From positions 620,001 to 684,000 of the forward strand of contig CBFDEM010000035.1 in NCBI GenBank assembly GCA_965603825.1: a stretch of 64,000 nt of DNA, read 5' to 3'. The translations under genes and the position numbers were made by a program. The notes below the pieces were generated by a model, which was not told the DNA's origin, did no database searches, and worked only from the letters and a program-made list of their open reading frames with translations. Positions 24,210 to 28,713 of the stretch are shown one piece after another; within the stretch, counting starts at the first letter, position 1, and each line of letters starts with the position of its first letter. The DNA comes from Blepharisma stoltei ATCC 30299. Its lineage: Eukaryota > Protista > Ciliophora.

Positions 24210-25823
24210 ATGGGGTGCTGCCAATCTCTACCAAATTCTACAAGCGAGCTTATTAGTGTAGTTCGTGAAGCTACTAAGCAAGACCTTCATAAAGAAGATA
24301 TAAAAGAAACCACAGACACTCATGCTCCGCAGCCACAAATTTATGACGACACCGCAAGCGATATTTCATCTAAACATAACAAAGCGTCTGTGCATACAGA
24401 CCCAGGTGTAAAAATCCGTAGAAAGCAGTTCGTCCATGTTATCAATGGAGATATCAGGCAATTTTATCAGGTGCAAGAAAAGCTTGGCAACGGCTCTTTT
24501 GGCAGTGTGCATAAAGCAATTCATATTAGTAGCGGAGCAGTTAGGGCTATAAAGGTGCTATCGAAATCAAAATTCAAGAAAGACGACCGAGAGAAGCTTA
24601 TACAAGAAGTAGAAATCCTGAAAGACCTTGACCATCCTAACATTTTAAAAATCTACGAAGTTATTGAAGATGACATCTCTCTTTATATTGTTACTGAGCT
24701 TTGTACAGGCGGAGAGCTTTTTGATAGAATTATTTCTCAGCATAGATTCTATGAAAATACAGCTGCCAGCTATATGTACCAAATAGTCTCAGCACTAATG
24801 TACTGCCATCAAAATGGTATAGTTCACAGAGACCTCAAGCCAGAAAACCTACTTTTTGAGAATGACTCACAAGATGCCCCGATCAAGGTCATTGATTTTG
24901 GGACTTCTTTAAAATTTTCGCCTAATACTAAACTGTCGAATTTTACAGGAACCGTAAGCTATAAATAGGCGTATTATGTAGCTCCAGAGGTAATTAAAGG
25001 GAAATATGACGAAAAATGTGATGTCTGAAGCGCTGGAGTTATTTTGTATATTATGCTATGTGGAATCCCACCATTTAACGCATCTTCTGAAAATGGGATT
25101 TTAATGAAAGTTTCTAGAGGCGTCTTCACCTTCGCAATGCCTGAGTGAAAAAACGTGTCTCAAGAAGCCAAAAGTCTAATAACAAAAATGCTTACCAAAG
25201 ACCCTGCAAAGCGGCCTTCAGCTGAAGAAGTCCTCCAAGACAAATGATTGCAAGGCAGAGTTGATCGGGAAATTAAAGGAAATCGACTCGCGAGGTCAAC
25301 CTTAACAAATCTTGGCGCTTTTAAAGTAAATTTTATATAGTCCGGCTGGAAACTCCAACAAGCGACTTTAGAATATATTGCGTCCCATTTAACAACTAAT
25401 GAAGAAACAGAAGAAATCAGAAAAGCTTTTATAGCACTTGATGATAATGGAGATGGAAAATTAAGCCCAGAAGAAATAAGGGCTGGCTGCTTGTCATTAA
25501 ACTTAGGAGCGGATGTAGAAGAAATTCTAGCACACTGCGACGCAGATGGGAATGGGTATATTGATTACACAGAATTTGTGACCGCCACGCTGGATTGGAA
25601 AAAAGTCCTTTCTCAAGAAAAGTTAGAGGCAGCTTTTAAGGCTTATGATACAGATAATAGTGGGACGATTTCTATAGACGAGTTTAAAGCATTTTTGGGT
25701 GGAAATGAAGGAGTAGAAGACTCAGTGTGGAAACAAATTTTTGATGAAGCCGATTCCAATGGAGACGGAGTGATTGATTTGGAAGAATTCAAGACAATAA
25801 TGATGAAAAATATGAATAATTAG
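24210..25823 (+). CDS. CDPK: Calcium-dependent protein kinase (527 aa, 2 introns)
   Basis: MGCC acylation motif, [22 protein letters not shown][TGA=W]SAG and four EF hands. Confidence 0.96.
24954..24968 (+). other. 15-nt spliceosomal intron
   Basis: GTAAGCTATAAATAG; removal restores GTAYYVAPE. Confidence 0.95.
25326..25340 (+). other. 15-nt spliceosomal intron
   Basis: GTAAATTTTATATAG; removal restores the CDPK junction [10 protein letters not shown]. Confidence 0.9.
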
Positions 25824-25890: not shown

Positions 25891-27819
25891 ATGTCAAACT
25901 CAGAACAGACTCCTCCGCAACAATCAGGTTTGAACGTAAATGCTGCTGAATTCAACTTCAACTTAAATGCCAGTGAGTTTGTTCCATCTTTTGGCACTAC
26001 ACAAGTAAACCCTCCTGGATATGAGAATCCTTCGTATCAAAATACGTACTTGTATAATCAAGACCCACAGAACATGTATTATAACCAGCAGTACCAGCAA
26101 TACGGCCAATATGGTCAATACGAATATCCTCAGCAGTACTATAACCTCCAGCAGCCTTATTATTACCCAGAAAATCAACCCCCTGAGGAGCCAGAAGAAC
26201 CAGAAGATAACACAATCAGCTTCAGTGACTTCGAAAACTCACGGTCAAGCAAGCCTAAAGTTACACCAGGCCCAAAACTTGGCTTTAAAAGTATAAATGT
26301 AGGGGAAGAAGTGCGACAAGTAGTCGAACAAGAAGAAGCCCCTAAAGAAGAAGTAAAAGTCGCCCCAAAAGTCAGGAAACCAGTCATCAAAAGCATCACA
26401 GAAAAACCAATTGACAAAGCTGCCTTAATCGCGAAACTAAGAGAATCAGCTGCTAATGAAGAACAGCCGCTTGTCGAGCCTGATAAAATAAAAGAGCCAG
26501 TTAACATTGTGTTTATTGGCCACGTGGACTCTGGGAAGTCAACTATTTGTGGAAGCATTTTATTGCTGTCTGGAAAAGTTGACCAAAGAATCATCGAAAC
26601 TTATGAACAAGAAGCCAAAAGGCTTGGAAGGGACTCATGGTGGCTTGCTTATATTATGGATCAAACTGACGAAGAAAGAGAAAAAGGGATCACGGTTGAA
26701 GTCGGAAAAGCGTTTTTTGAGACTCCGACAAAAAGATTTTCAATTTTAGATGCCCCAGGCCATAAAGCTTATGTCCCTAATATGATAGGAGGTGCATCTC
26801 AAGCTGACTATGCATCTTTGGTGATTTCTGCAAGAATTAGTGAGTTCGAAACTGGATTCGACAGAGGTGGCCAAACCCGAGAGCATGCTATGTTGGCCAA
26901 GTCTCTAGGAATTAGCAACTTAATAGTCGTCATCAACAAAATGGACGACCCTTCAGTCAACTGGTCTCAAGATCGCTTTGAACAGATCAAGCGAGAAATG
27001 AGCCCATTTTTGTCGGAAAAATGCAAATATGACCTTAGCCAAGTCCACTGGATCCCAATTTCTGGCATTTCAGGGGCTAATATTATAGAAAGAGTTAAAC
27101 CAGAGACTGCACCTTGGTATAATGGCCCAACACTTTTTGAGATTTTCGACTCTTTACCACTGCCTGTGAGGTCTGCTGAAGCTCCATTAAGAATCCCAAT
27201 ACTTGACAGAAGCAAAGACCAAGGAATAATCATATATGGAAAAGTAGAAAGTGGGCAAGTTGTCAAAGGGCAGAGAGTTATCGTCATGCCTATCAGGATA
27301 AAAGGAGAAATCGTAGAAATTATTGGAGCTGAAGAATCTAGGCTTATGTACGCAAATGCTGGAGAAAATGTAAGGATCAAATTGAAGGTCCCTGAAGAAG
27401 TTGAAATTCAGAGAGGGTTTACTATTTGTGATATACACGATGTCTGTCATGCAGCACAAGAATTTTCTGCTGACGTACAACTCTTAGATCTTTTAGAAGA
27501 AAAGCAAGTCGTCTCAGCTGGCTACCAATGTGTTATGCACGCCCACACAGCAGTTGAAGAATGCGAGATCTTAGAAATCACTGCCCTAATTGATGTTGCT
27601 AGAAAAAAGAAATCAAAAACGTCATTTGGCAGGTCAAACCAAAGGATTTTGATGCGTGTTAAAGCAGAAGAAGAAATCTGTGTAGAGCCATTTACCAAAA
27701 TGAACCAGCTTGGAAGATTTACACTGAGAGATGAAGGTAAAACAGTTGGGCTTGGAAAAATCATTGAAATTGTGGAAGCAGCAGAAGAAGCTCCAGAAGA
27801 AGAGCCAGCTAATAAGTAA
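25891..27819 (+). CDS. SUP35: Eukaryotic release factor 3 (eRF3/Sup35/GSPT), 642 aa
   Basis: GHVDSGKST, EREKGITVEVG, LDAPGHKAYVPNMIGGASQAD, GGQTREH, NKMD and GRFTLRDEGKTV; N-terminal PAM2 motifs. Confidence 0.96.
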   Translation: MSNSEQTPPQQSGLNVNAAEFNFNLNASEFVPSFGTTQVNPPGYENPSYQNTYLYNQDPQNMYYNQQYQQYGQYGQYEYPQQYYNLQQPYYYPENQPPEEPEEPEDNTISFSDFENSRSSKPKVTPGPKLGFKSINVGEEVRQVVEQEEAPKEEVKVAPKVRKPVIKSITEKPIDKAALIAKLRESAANEEQPLVEPDKIKEPVNIVFIGHVDSGKSTICGSILLLSGKVDQRIIETYEQEAKRLGRDSWWLAYIMDQTDEEREKGITVEVGKAFFETPTKRFSILDAPGHKAYVPNMIGGASQADYASLVISARISEFETGFDRGGQTREHAMLAKSLGISNLIVVINKMDDPSVNWSQDRFEQIKREMSPFLSEKCKYDLSQVHWIPISGISGANIIERVKPETAPWYNGPTLFEIFDSLPLPVRSAEAPLRIPILDRSKDQGIIIYGKVESGQVVKGQRVIVMPIRIKGEIVEIIGAEESRLMYANAGENVRIKLKVPEEVEIQRGFTICDIHDVCHAAQEFSADVQLLDLLEEKQVVSAGYQCVMHAHTAVEECEILEITALIDVARKKKSKTSFGRSNQRILMRVKAEEEICVEPFTKMNQLGRFTLRDEGKTVGLGKIIEIVEAAEEAPEEEPANK

Positions 27820-27822
27820 TCT

Positions 27823-28713
27823 CTATTCTTTAATTATACTAGCTCTTAAAGGATTGTCTCCTTCTTTTCCCTCATCTTCATTTTTCTCATCCTCTTCTTC
27901 TTTCTTTTCTTCCTCATGTTCTTGCCCTATTTCATTCTTTTCTTCTTCTTCTTCTTCTTCCTCGCTACTTTCCTCTTCTACTTTTTCTTCTTCTACCTCA
28001 GCTTCTTTTTTAACTTCAATATGGTGTTTACAATTTGGGCATTCTTCAATATTTAGCTTGCATAAAATGCAAACATAACACCCACAAAGGCATTTGTTAA
28101 AAAATGCATCCTCATCAAATATACCTTTGCAAATGCTGCATCTATCAAATAATGGGATTTTTTCTCCTGGTTTTTCTTTGGTTCCTATTTCGTATATTTC
28201 TTTAATATCTTTTCTATCATATTCGCGCTTGCATGAAGGACAGCTCAATATGCGCTCTGAATAATTTAAATATATACAGGCATCGCAAACTCTGCAAAAG
28301 CATTTTTGATCCATAAGCGATTTCAGTTTATAAAGAGAATTACAAGAAAAGCAGCAGCCATTTTTTATTTTGAACAACACATCCGATTCTAAGTTTTTAA
28401 GCACTTCTAGTTGCCAAGGAATATTCTTTTGCTCAAATCTCGTAAATTTTACGTTGTGTTCGCAGCTCTGTAATTCAAAATATTTTTCTAAGCATTGCAA
28501 ACAATGATTTTTTTGGCAATTAGTTAGCTGTATTTCCATGCCCTCAAAATGGCCATCTAGTGAGTGTTTTATGTTAAATCCAGCATCAAGCTCTTTATGA
28601 AGTCTTAACCCATCGATATCTTCCTCAATTTCCTTTATTTTTTCTTCTGTCAGCATTCCATTTGATAAAGTGTCCAGAAGTATGACTCTACAAATATCTT
28701 CTCATATATCCAT
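27823..28713 (-). CDS. Cys-rich (degenerate RING-like) protein with an acidic tail (296 aa)
   Basis: Several CxxC/CxC clusters and a Glu-rich C-terminus; extended to ATG 28713 through one TGA. Confidence 0.7.

Follow-up and report, generated by a model that had tools for sequence, protein, structure and literature searches.

The translation-termination factor eRF3 of Blepharisma stoltei with an overlapping PAM2 pair and a Tyr/Gln/Asn-rich stretch of prion-like composition

[quoted passage not shown] The eRF3 of yeast is devoid of PAM2 (PMC4274632). The PAM2 motif is defined by a hydrophobic residue at position 3, a polar residue at position 4 and invariant Ala and Phe at positions 7 and 10, and Pro at position 12 is usual, not invariant (PMC2854688). 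In Blepharisma, UGA is depleted ahead of stop codons, and the eRF1 of B. japonicum weakly recognises UGA in vitro (bioRxiv 10.1101/2023.10.09.561518).

In the window, the whole analysed stretch of 64,000 nucleotides to which all positions refer, an open reading frame of 642 aa without internal stops and without TGA codons was detected (25891-27819). Its first part (25891-26460) translates exactly as described in an earlier model-made annotation, referred to below as the sequence-only reading. Transcript-type contigs are colinear with the genome from 25931 to 27833, with 0 differences and 0 gaps, and the ORF is therefore considered intronless; the listed exact contigs start at 25931 and leave the initial 40 nt of the coding sequence uncovered. 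The 15-nt introns typical of heterotrichs, which could be hidden in frame, were ruled out over 25931-27833 by the gap-free contigs. The eRF3 gene is transcribed alongside its paralogue, whose contig was found at a depth similar to that of the eRF3 contigs. Behind 27836, eight A's form a loose end in run X4, and the genomic bases past this position are not A's.

The closest named proteins are a B. stoltei paralogue (82% identity) and those of Stentor coeruleus (57-58%), and the farther matches are named eRF3. The identity amounts to 50-58% for proteins designated eRF3 or peptide chain release factor subunit 3 by their source, but only to 38-40% for other EF1A-family loci of the own genome. The G domain carries the motifs GHVDSGKS (G1, 210), DAPGH (G3, 287) and NKMD (G4, 349), and 3′ of it PF03144, PF03143 and PF22594 each score above their own cut-off. 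In a tree (MAFFT + FastTree) that was rooted on the eEF1A-like gene of the genome and built without bona fide HBS1 and without L003, one of the eRF3-like paralogues described below, the protein is placed inside the eRF3 clade together with Stentor eRF3. Judged from domains and phylogeny, the protein is assigned to eRF3/GSPT, the class-II release factor, with a complete GTPase core, and appears to be an ordinary expressed translation-termination GTPase for which eRF1 binding and GTP-dependent release are predicted. The gene is best explained as a member of a pair of major eRF3 paralogues in Blepharisma that are expressed together and diverged recently. The coordinates of its features are collected in Table 1.

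Table 1. Features of the eRF3 gene, with positions given in the window.
Feature	Residues	Position	Strand	Basis
eRF3 coding sequence, intronless, 642 codons + TAA		25891..27819	+	ORF; Pfam GTP_EFTU, D2 and D3; colinear transcript-type contigs
PAM2-N	12-23	25924..25959	+	Pfam PAM2 match; ungapped alignment to human eRF3a 68-97; definition in PMC2854688
PAM2-C, overlapping PAM2-N, Phe21 common to both	21-32	25951..25986	+	best Pfam PAM2 stretch at residues 23-34
Tyr/Gln/Asn-rich low-complexity stretch	43-96	26017..26178	+	counts, genome outlier, PAPA, pLDDT
Acidic Pro/Glu cluster	97-106	26179..26208	+	kept in paralogue
Heterotrich-conserved motifs, ISFSDF helix and GPKLGFK	109-118 and 127-133	26215..26289	+	(nearly) invariant columns in alignments A1 and A2
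Charged Glu/Lys/Pro linker with conserved terminal helix (EKPIDK..L..KLRE, residues 171-188) just before the G domain		26290..26490	+	composition, alignment, AF2
GTPase domain	203-399	26497..27087	+	Pfam PF00009, E = 2.7e-44; G1/G3/G4 motifs
EF-Tu-type domains 2 and 3	445-627	27223..27771	+	Pfam PF03144, PF03143, PF22594
3′ UTR, 17 nt		27820..27836	+	contig ends at 27833/27836; non-templated poly(A) run begins past 27836

Two overlapping PAM2 motifs near the N-terminus had been proposed by the sequence-only reading, and they were recovered by Pfam (PF07145) with 22.0 bits for the whole protein and 25.7 bits for the N-terminal 190 aa (cut-off 20), in two stretches, as well as by an alignment without gaps of residues 13-42 to residues 68-97 of human eRF3a, which span its overlapping PAM2-N and PAM2-C. 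The two motifs overlap by three residues with one Phe in common, in the register of human eRF3a, and a regular expression written for the double motif also recovers them. Both halves fit the definition at positions 3, 4, 7 and 10: PAM2-N contains Leu14, Asn15, Val16, Ala18, Glu20 and Phe21 at positions 3, 4, 5, 7, 9 and 10, and PAM2-C contains Phe23, Asn24, Ala27, Glu29, Phe30 and Pro32 at positions 3, 4, 7, 9, 10 and 12. Position 12 of PAM2-N is Phe23 and not Pro, as in most non-metazoan eRF3s. The same reading regarded overlapping PAM2 motifs as typical of metazoan GSPT, which did not hold up: of the 120 best eRF3 matches, 42 show the 19-residue double PAM2 in the same register, among them proteins of Stentor and other ciliates, of land plants, and of a green alga and a nematode. 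From this distribution the overlapping PAM2 pair appears to be an ancestral eukaryotic feature of eRF3. The known receptor of PAM2 is the MLLE domain. A family profile search of the genome resulted in 12 MLLE matches above the cut-off, and the KITGMLLE signature is intact in four PABP-like ORFs.

The reassignment of UGA to Trp, another claim of the earlier annotation, is borne out by a TGA in an eRF3 paralogue that aligns with the conserved Trp250 and by in-frame TGA codons in 99 of the 167 sampled ORFs, with a TGA/(TGA+TGG) ratio of 0.34. The published depletion of UGA ahead of stops was reproduced in our own ORF sample, in which 6 of 258 TGA versus 49 of 507 TGG codons fall into the last 25 codons (Fisher p = 9e-5). 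TGA depletion near stops and the short 3′ UTR agree with PMC4967479 and bioRxiv 10.1101/2023.10.09.561518. Competition between eRF1 and tRNA near poly(A) tails is supported by published and local evidence, and as a premise, release-factor competition at UGA is not absurd. The PAM2 pair would dock eRF3 on PABP-coated poly(A) tails and, together with short 3′ UTRs, this docking could concentrate the release complex at genuine stops. Such a docking model is in line with the scarcity of TGA (Trp) that was seen among the last ~25 codons of genes.

For residues 43-96, a recount gave the same numbers as the earlier hand count, with 16 Y, 14 Q and 7 N of 54 (68.5%) and four charged residues; Tyr accounts for 30% and Pro for ~9% of the stretch. 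As a background, 167 ORFs with 67.6 k aa in total were sampled from ~290 kb of the same genome; their best Q/N/Y count per 54 aa has a median of 12 and a 99th percentile of ~24. The eRF3 ranks highest with 37/54, followed by its paralogue with 27/54 and the next unrelated ORF with 22/54. With a proteome frequency of 0.135, the binomial P for the eRF3 count is ~3e-20, and the Q/N/Y bias is more than chance. According to our own re-implementation of the algorithm and scale of PAPA, which underlies every PAPA score given here, eRF3 reaches 0.095 against a threshold of 0.05 (window start at residue 42; FoldIndex -0.38) and the paralogue 0.102, whereas values of -0.02 and -0.10 were obtained for Stentor and -0.10 for mammalian eRF3B; the threshold is also passed by 3 of 165 unrelated ORFs. 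AlphaFold assigns a pLDDT of 43-48 and no secondary structure to residues 43-96, and the stretch is predicted to be disordered and prion-like by composition. No family match was found for it, and a search for look-alikes of residues 1-110 in the ESM Atlas revealed no usable match, with all structural rows at TM < 0.35.

The repeats in the stretch comprise two weak 9-nt arrays of 2.2-2.8 copies, and the QQY/GQY patterns are not regular. Synonymous codons are mixed across the stretch, the local GC of 0.42 is above that of the surroundings, and Lys, Ile and Phe are not in excess. An origin by AT-drift or from a microsatellite could be ruled out by this GC value, the mixed codons and the weak 9-nt periodicity.

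Downstream, the sequence-only reading had described a charged E/K/P linker. The charge was confirmed (37.5% of residues 97-200), but a plain linker it is not, as it includes the heterotrich-conserved motifs and two predicted helices. AF2 places these helices at residues 111-118 and 176-188; E171, K176 and L179 are invariant, and the ISFSDF and GPKLGFK motifs also occur in the RWD-bearing paralogue L003.

The stretch is older than the old duplication that separates the two main paralogues, because the co-expressed paralogue has it as well. In a transcript contig of a sister organism, it aligns at the DNA level with a length within one codon. Two further eRF3-like paralogues of the genome (L003 and L004) have no such stretch; for these two, which contain in-frame TGA, the family scan was carried out on the pieces between TGA codons, and TGA was otherwise translated as Trp. 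The G1 motif of L003 is GHLDSGKS. Between eRF3 and the co-expressed paralogue, dN is 0.47 in the stretch and 0.07 in the GTPase, while dS is saturated.

These data bear on the possible, although on balance doubtful, explanation that residues 43-96 are a weakly constrained low-complexity spacer which replaced a folded module or degenerated from it, with the sole role of setting the distance between PAM2 and GTPase and an incidental prion-like score. The stretch is the fastest-evolving part of the protein, indels are present, only 45 of its 54 codons could be aligned with the paralogue, which is 10 aa shorter and has a much weaker bias, and there is neither a fold nor a family match; eRF3 N domains are, moreover, notoriously variable in length and sequence (PMC2613156). 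On the other hand, a mere spacer does not lead one to expect the most extreme bias among 167 sampled ORFs, with AT-drift excluded and no pure repeat that would point to recent slippage, nor that composition and PAPA score are kept in both paralogues despite saturated dS and that the stretch is colinear in the sister organism. Fast amino-acid evolution of the stretch also fits a weakly constrained spacer.

As the best explanation, we tentatively propose a PAM2-docking eRF3 in which the stretch serves as a flexible tether with many aromatic 'stickers' and occupies the slot of the folded module of Stentor-type eRF3s. Judged from composition, the stickers could mediate a weak, reversible self-association of eRF3 of the condensate type, which may be responsive to stress. 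This self-association would be analogous to, not homologous with, that of the yeast Sup35 N domain, and the stretch is not read as a heritable prion determinant. In the PABP-like proteins of the genome, no matching Q/N/Y-rich region was present, which was counted against co-assembly. The short length of 54 aa, the Pro content of ~9% and the Q/N count of 28/80 were counted against self-association.

A Sup35-like architecture had been claimed by the sequence-only reading. Order and composition stood up, with a disordered Q/N/Y stretch followed by a charged region and a positive PAPA score, but not the Q/N content: the best count of 28/80 falls short of the minimum of 30 Q/N per 80 residues set by the classical criterion, and the bias results largely from Tyr. 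A true [PSI+]-like prion domain, with self-templating amyloid, cytoplasmic inheritance and less active eRF3, and with altered termination at UAA/UAG and an altered eRF1-tRNA balance at UGA, is considered very improbable, even if the stretch is N-terminal, PAPA is above the threshold in both paralogues, the QQY/GQY pattern resembles the oligopeptide repeats of Sup35 and a residual recognition of UGA by Blepharisma eRF1 is published (bioRxiv 10.1101/2023.10.09.561518). Against it stand the Q/N count, the shortness of the stretch and its weak repeats, and termination could be kept up by the two additional eRF3-like paralogues, which lack the stretch. The propagation of yeast prions requires Hsp104 for the fragmentation of propagons. 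In a six-frame family scan of the genome, by which divergent genes can be missed, neither an Hsp104/ClpB-type disaggregase nor a two-ring ClpB-like match was found, which also argues against a prion; the single ClpB_D2-small match (29.8 bits) lies in a 405-aa frame that also yielded the best AAA_2 match (77.2 bits). Furthermore, the Q/G/N/Y repeats of kinetoplastids come without evidence of prion behaviour (PMC2613156), and the aggregates of Dictyostelium ERF3 are not heritable (PMC11537047).

The 'switch on codon meaning' of the earlier annotation, its prion or condensate behaviour and its link to UGA decoding are speculation. In the form of a protein-assembly switch, the stretch in the two PABP-docking paralogues would sequester the release complex reversibly and depending on conditions and thereby shift the balance of eRF1/eRF3 versus tRNA near poly(A). 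With UGA read by a near-cognate tRNA and weakly recognised by eRF1, read-through of UAA/UAG and accidental 3′-proximal termination at UGA would then vary with physiology. We regard this as highly unlikely; codon specificity resides in eRF1 and the tRNA, and the two further eRF3-like paralogues that are free of the stretch could buffer the sequestration.

With 57-58% identity and a tree support of 0.95, SteCoe_18710 and SteCoe_35078 of Stentor coeruleus form the nearest outgroup clade together with the Stentor-like sequences P0005-P0011. These Stentor-type eRF3s share the PAM2 pair, the ISFSDF and GPK.GFK motifs and the helix in front of the GTPase, whereas between PAM2 and ISFSDF their slot is filled by a conserved module instead of a low-complexity stretch, with Q/N/Y counts of 10-15/54 and negative PAPA scores. 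The module is confidently folded by AF2 into three strands and a helix (pLDDT 85-92), a Foldseek search of it against the PDB gave no match at E <= 0.001, and a probable remnant was found in the outgroup sequence P0012. Stentor uses the standard genetic code and is without the stretch, while Blepharisma reads UGA as Trp; in the comparison of eRF3 N-termini across heterotrich codes, as proposed by the earlier annotation, Stentor is the one named heterotrich covered besides Blepharisma. From these comparisons, the Q/N/Y stretch appears to be Blepharisma-specific and to have arisen within that lineage.

The Stentor-type module suggests one more explanation, in which the Tyr-rich stretch is its degenerate descendant and binds the same ligand, e.g., a ribosomal or mRNA-decay factor, via short aromatic motifs. 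Alignment A1 sets the YY/Y..Y of Blepharisma opposite the conserved aromatic core of the module, and both the confident fold in Stentor and the likely remnant in P0012 are in favour of it, but the alignment is compositional and gapped here, AF2 gives the Blepharisma stretch no residual structure, and the module itself is without a match to a known fold. Such a partner-binding region is considered unlikely.

The Blepharisma eRF3 is a real new case of a known kind, an eRF3 with a prion-like composition of the N domain. The PAM2-PABP link and the availability of eRF3 are central to the leading model, according to which ciliates tell stop from sense by the proximity of poly(A). In this heterotrich, where UGA = Trp, the canonical pair of overlapping PAM2 motifs has been retained along with MLLE receptors, and just 17 nt separate the stop codon of its eRF3 from poly(A). 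This eRF3 appears to have gained independently a prion-like, Tyr-rich disordered stretch where a folded module stood. Self-assembly of the stretch, if it occurs, would make this the third case in which a Sup35-like regulatory N-domain originated independently on eRF3, and would render conditional termination tractable in an organism with a variant code. Without self-assembly, the stretch would be a clean example of release-factor N-termini often drifting into prion-like composition and would argue against function being read from composition alone.

Compared with human eRF3a/GSPT1 (sequence of PDB 5LZT chain jj; MLLE complexes in PMC2854688), the same 19-residue double motif is present in the same register: the central Phe is shared, each half has the invariant Ala7 and Phe10, and PAM2-C has Pro12. 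A difference lies in the residue that serves both as position 12 of PAM2-N and as position 3 of PAM2-C, where Blepharisma, like plants and other ciliates, has Phe in place of Pro. The human protein has a Gly repeat, no Q/N/Y-rich stretch and a negative PAPA score.

Sup35 of Saccharomyces cerevisiae, whose N/M region is the [PSI+] determinant, belongs to the same family and has the same succession of an N-terminal disordered Q/N/Y-rich stretch with QQY/GQY-like patterns, a charged region and the GTPase; the Blepharisma stretch also passes the yeast-trained prion-propensity score as re-implemented here. It is, however, shorter than Sup35 N (54 versus ~120 aa), dominated by Tyr (30%) and lower in Q/N (28/80), a canonical PAM2 pair stands in front of it and a middle region with conserved motifs behind it, and, unlike in yeast, an Hsp104-type disaggregase was not found in the genome scan. 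Neither the sister Stentor-type clade nor other ciliate eRF3s have the stretch, their slot being occupied by another sequence; the stretch is therefore interpreted as convergent with the Sup35 N domain and, by sequence comparison, as not homologous to it.

Another convergent, non-fungal N-terminal extension of prion-like composition is formed by the Gln/Gly/Asn/Tyr repeats of the eRF3 of Leishmania major and Trypanosoma cruzi (Atkinson et al. 2008, PMC2613156), which, compared by their published description, belong to another lineage and differ in repeat organisation. ERF3 of Dictyostelium discoideum is a protist eRF3 that was checked for Sup35-like behaviour (PMC11537047). It aggregates under stress and has no Q/N-rich region, which implies that eRF3 aggregation needs no prion-like stretch.

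The eRF3 gene consists of a single open frame that ends with a TAA codon at 27817-27819 and contains 0 internal stops and 0 TGA codons. The translation from 25891 presented in the sequence-only reading was reproduced exactly, and all G motifs of the encoded GTPase are intact. The nearest named protein (82% identity), recorded for Blepharisma stoltei as 'unnamed protein product', is a paralogue located in the same assembly (locus L002; 41.46 Mb in 64 contigs searched). It is followed by two proteins from Stentor coeruleus with 57-58% identity, and remoter homologues bear the names eRF3 or peptide chain release factor subunit 3.

Features of the eRF3 gene, its neighbours and further eRF3-like loci (PAM2 motif positions in brackets; res, residues of eRF3)
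Feature	Position	Description
Upstream ORF	25491-25823 (+)	
eRF3 ORF	25891-27819 (+)	642 codons
PAM2-N	res 12-23	L14 (3), N15 (4), V16 (5), A18 (7), E20 (9), F21 (10), F23 (12)
PAM2-C	res 21-32	F23 (3), N24 (4), L25 (5), A27 (7), E29 (9), F30 (10), P32 (12)
PAM2 (PF07145)	two stretches	22.0 bits whole protein, 25.7 bits first 190 residues; gathering cut-off 20
Q/N/Y stretch	26017-26178; res 43-96	16 Y, 14 Q, 7 N of 54; 4 charged
Short helices	res 111-118, 176-188	AlphaFold
EF-Tu-type GTPase	res 203-399	Pfam, E = 2.7e-44
Domain 2	res 445-513	Pfam
Domain 3 / eEF1A-C	res 520-627	Pfam
Convergent ORF	27823-28656 (-)	277 aa, Glu-rich and Cys-rich
Third eRF3-like paralogue	L003:1048-3069 (contig C33, about 66985-69006)	58% identity from res 107 on
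Fourth eRF3-like paralogue	L004:1342-2988 (contig C44, about 506702-508348)	52% identity, without PAM2

Heterotrich introns are tiny, often 15 nt in length. Since introns of this size are invisible in an ORF, the locus was compared with public transcript-type contigs. Contigs of ~1.9 kb from three runs of one 2022 study match 25931-27833 (or 25977/25979 to 27833/27836) colinearly, without a single difference or gap, and one of them carries eight non-templated A's past 27836. The coding sequence is therefore intronless at least for codons 14-642, and the gene is transcribed with a 3′UTR of 17 nt. A second transcript contig, ~82% alike and of comparable depth, represents the paralogue. The convergent ORF faces the eRF3 3′ end, and the eRF3 poly(A) site lies ~14 nt inside the 3′ end of that ORF, so that the two transcripts must share a few bases at their tails. 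Judged by eye, the upstream ORF, with its loops of D.D.NG type, resembles the EF-hand tail of a calmodulin-like protein or a calcium-dependent kinase.

According to Kozlov and Gehring, PAM2 motifs have a hydrophobic residue at position 3, a polar one at 4, Pro or Val at 5, an invariant Ala at 7, preferably Glu at 9, an invariant Phe at 10 and usually Pro at 12 (PMC2854688). In human eRF3a two such motifs overlap and have Phe76 in common (PMC2854688); in Blepharisma the common Phe is F21, and the region aligns with residues 68-97 of the human protein without gaps. The earlier statement that overlapping PAM2s are typical of metazoan GSPT was too narrow, as the double motif (19-residue pattern) is present in 42 of the 120 best eRF3 matches. 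These include both Stentor and all unnamed Stentor-like proteins as well as gymnosperms, ferns, bryophytes, Chlorella, a nematode and vertebrates; in most non-metazoan cases, Blepharisma included, the junction residue is Phe or Trp, not Pro. The occurrence in heterotrichs, plants, an alga and animals points to an ancient eukaryotic eRF3 feature, and budding yeast is a lineage without the pair (PMC4274632). On the receptor side, 12 MLLE matches above the cut-off were found in the genome, and the KITGMLLE signature is unchanged in four PABP-like ORFs of ~550-585 aa each.

The residue counts of the Q/N/Y stretch, previously made by hand, are exact. The background set comprised 167 ORFs that do not overlap one another and have a minimum length of 150 aa (67.6 k aa in total, with TGA translated as Trp); it was drawn from the window and from loci L002-L026, which cover the paralogues and 200 kb from other parts of the genome. 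Q, N and Y account for 13.5% of these residues, and the best 54-residue window per ORF has a median of 12 and a 99th percentile of ~24. With 37, eRF3 ranks first, followed by the paralogue (27), which is not an independent draw because it was obtained by homology, and the top unrelated ORF (22). This confirms the stretch as a real feature that is statistically extreme for this genome.

Two origins of the bias were considered and rejected. For AT drift, the local GC of 0.42 is higher than in the flanks and the residues Lys, Ile and Phe are not overrepresented; for a fresh microsatellite, the only arrays detected are two weak ones with 2-3 copies of a 9-nt unit, and synonymous codons are mixed (TAT 10 / TAC 6, CAG 8 / CAA 6).

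In an alignment of 16 eRF3 N-terminal regions, the PAM2 pair, ISFSDF, GPK.GFK, a charged Glu/Lys stretch and the subsequent pre-GTPase motif EKPIDK..L..KLRE are kept across heterotrich-like eRF3s. The linker described earlier is indeed 37.5% charged, but due to these conserved motifs the 'M-like' region is not featureless. Between PAM2 and ISFSDF, Stentor-type eRF3s possess a strongly conserved aromatic module (68% mean column identity in a separate alignment), which in Stentor coeruleus eRF3 (residues ~40-95) is modelled by AlphaFold with a pLDDT of 85-92, strands at 60-63, 69-72 and 78-82 and a helix at 84-94. The module matched neither a Pfam family nor, at E <= 0.001, a PDB fold. The equivalent slot in Blepharisma, in contrast, is predicted to be disordered, with a pLDDT of 43-48 and no secondary structure (PAM2 region 67-68).

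In a FastTree phylogeny of the region from the GTPase to the C-terminus, the paralogues of Blepharisma form a pair (support 1.0) that is sister to the Stentor-type clade (0.95); the homologue P0012, which possibly retains a remnant of the aromatic module, lies outside both (0.99). From this we weakly infer that the folded module was the ancestral state and that the Blepharisma stem lost it, by replacement or degeneration, before the gene was duplicated. That the stretch is itself a degenerate partner-binding region is unlikely.

The paralogues have diverged to saturation at synonymous sites (dS ~0.85-1.3), and dN between them is 0.07 for the GTPase, 0.11 for the middle region, 0.13 for the PAM2 region and 0.47 for the Q/N/Y stretch, which also contains indels; here composition persists rather than sequence. 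A 2015 transcript run of a sister organism contains orthologues of both. The eRF3 orthologue aligns as a single segment between 25973 and 27808 (118 differences, net length change 3 nt), thus the stretch is colinear at the DNA level; the version in the paralogue is too divergent for alignment and appears as a replaced segment. A merely tolerated spacer is a possible reading of such a stretch, though not the first choice. We tentatively prefer an eRF3 that docks on PABP and has, as a lineage-specific feature, a disordered tether rich in Tyr which would, judged by composition, give weak reversible self-association.

Prion-like propensity was scored with a re-implementation of PAPA (propensity scale, 41-residue windows, FoldIndex filter, usual threshold 0.05), so that all PAPA figures are indicative only. 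Blepharisma eRF3 reached 0.095 (window start at residue 42), the paralogue 0.102 and P0025, a Q/Y-rich eRF3, 0.111, compared to -0.02 and -0.10 for Stentor and -0.10 for mammalian eRF3B; 3 of 165 unrelated ORFs exceeded the threshold. A true heritable determinant of the Sup35 type is nevertheless very improbable: no 80-residue window holds more than 28 Q/N, just short of the classical 30, the stretch comprises only 54 residues with ~9% Pro, its repeats are weak, and scanning the genome with two Pfam families revealed no Hsp104/ClpB-type two-ring disaggregase. The sole ClpB_D2-small match, which is also the best AAA_2 match, is one 405-aa frame on contig C56 (~223268-223846) that may be ClpX-like.

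Two further eRF3-like paralogues were found. The L003 protein shares the middle region (ISFSDF, KLGFK, EKPIDK..L..KLKE) and an intact P-loop (GHLDSGKS), and carries an RWD domain (PF05773, 68.6 bits) in place of PAM2 and the Q/N/Y stretch, which looks like N-terminal module swapping on a single release-factor scaffold. The N-terminus of L004 is similar to the acidic 'D.WE.LD' start of the homologues P0021 and P0022, the motif Trp being encoded by TGA, and L004 groups with P0022 (support 0.99), separate from the PAM2-bearing pair.

The reassignment of UGA is borne out by L003, where one of two in-frame TGA codons is aligned to the conserved Trp250. In-frame TGA occurs in 99 of the 167 ORFs, and TGA/(TGA+TGG) is 0.34, close to the published counts of 44,087 TGA and 78,535 TGG (bioRxiv 10.1101/2023.10.09.561518). 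Swart et al. described decoding by a tRNA-Trp(CCA) with a 4-bp anticodon stem, and regarded the weak UGA recognition that persists in vitro for B. japonicum eRF1 and the UGA depletion 25-30 codons ahead of stops as signs of ongoing eRF1-tRNA competition (bioRxiv 10.1101/2023.10.09.561518). In the 167 ORFs, TGA is likewise underrepresented among the final 25 codons (6 of 258, expected 15.9) and TGG enriched there (49 of 507, expected 31.3; Fisher p = 9e-5 versus TGA). In an earlier model, nearby PABP-bound poly(A) triggers termination via eRF3 (PMC4967479). At the sequence level, the physical link assumed there is backed by the PAM2 pair, by MLLE receptors in the genome and by the 3′UTR of 17 nt, which is the best-supported mechanistic conclusion on this locus. 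The proposal that the Q/N/Y stretch specifically affects what codons mean is not supported, because codon specificity is a property of eRF1 and tRNA, a single heterotrich lineage underlies the link to a variant code, fungi and kinetoplastids with the standard code also have eRF3 N-domains of prion-like type, and the two stretch-less paralogues could sustain termination.

The eRF3 of Plagiopyla frontata (EukProt), a ciliate reported with UGA = Trp/stop (bioRxiv 10.1101/2023.10.09.561518), is a second case of a Q/Y-rich N-terminus in a UGA = Trp ciliate. Its long Q/Y/D/E-rich extension reaches 32 Q/N/Y in 54 residues, with UAR = Gln inflating Gln generally, and a PAPA value of 0.156 (same re-implementation) elsewhere in the N region; no PAM2 was detected by family scan or double-motif pattern.

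Q/G/N/Y-rich repeats in eRF3 N-domains are described for fungi and, convergently, for Leishmania and T. cruzi, where evidence for prion behaviour is lacking (PMC2613156). Dictyostelium ERF3 aggregates under stress via its ordered C-domain, and this state is not inherited (PMC11537047). Prion-like composition of eRF3 N-termini is thus already known and recurrent, and Blepharisma eRF3 is a ciliate instance, of added interest in that the stretch is found together with a canonical PAM2 pair and stands in place of a folded module.
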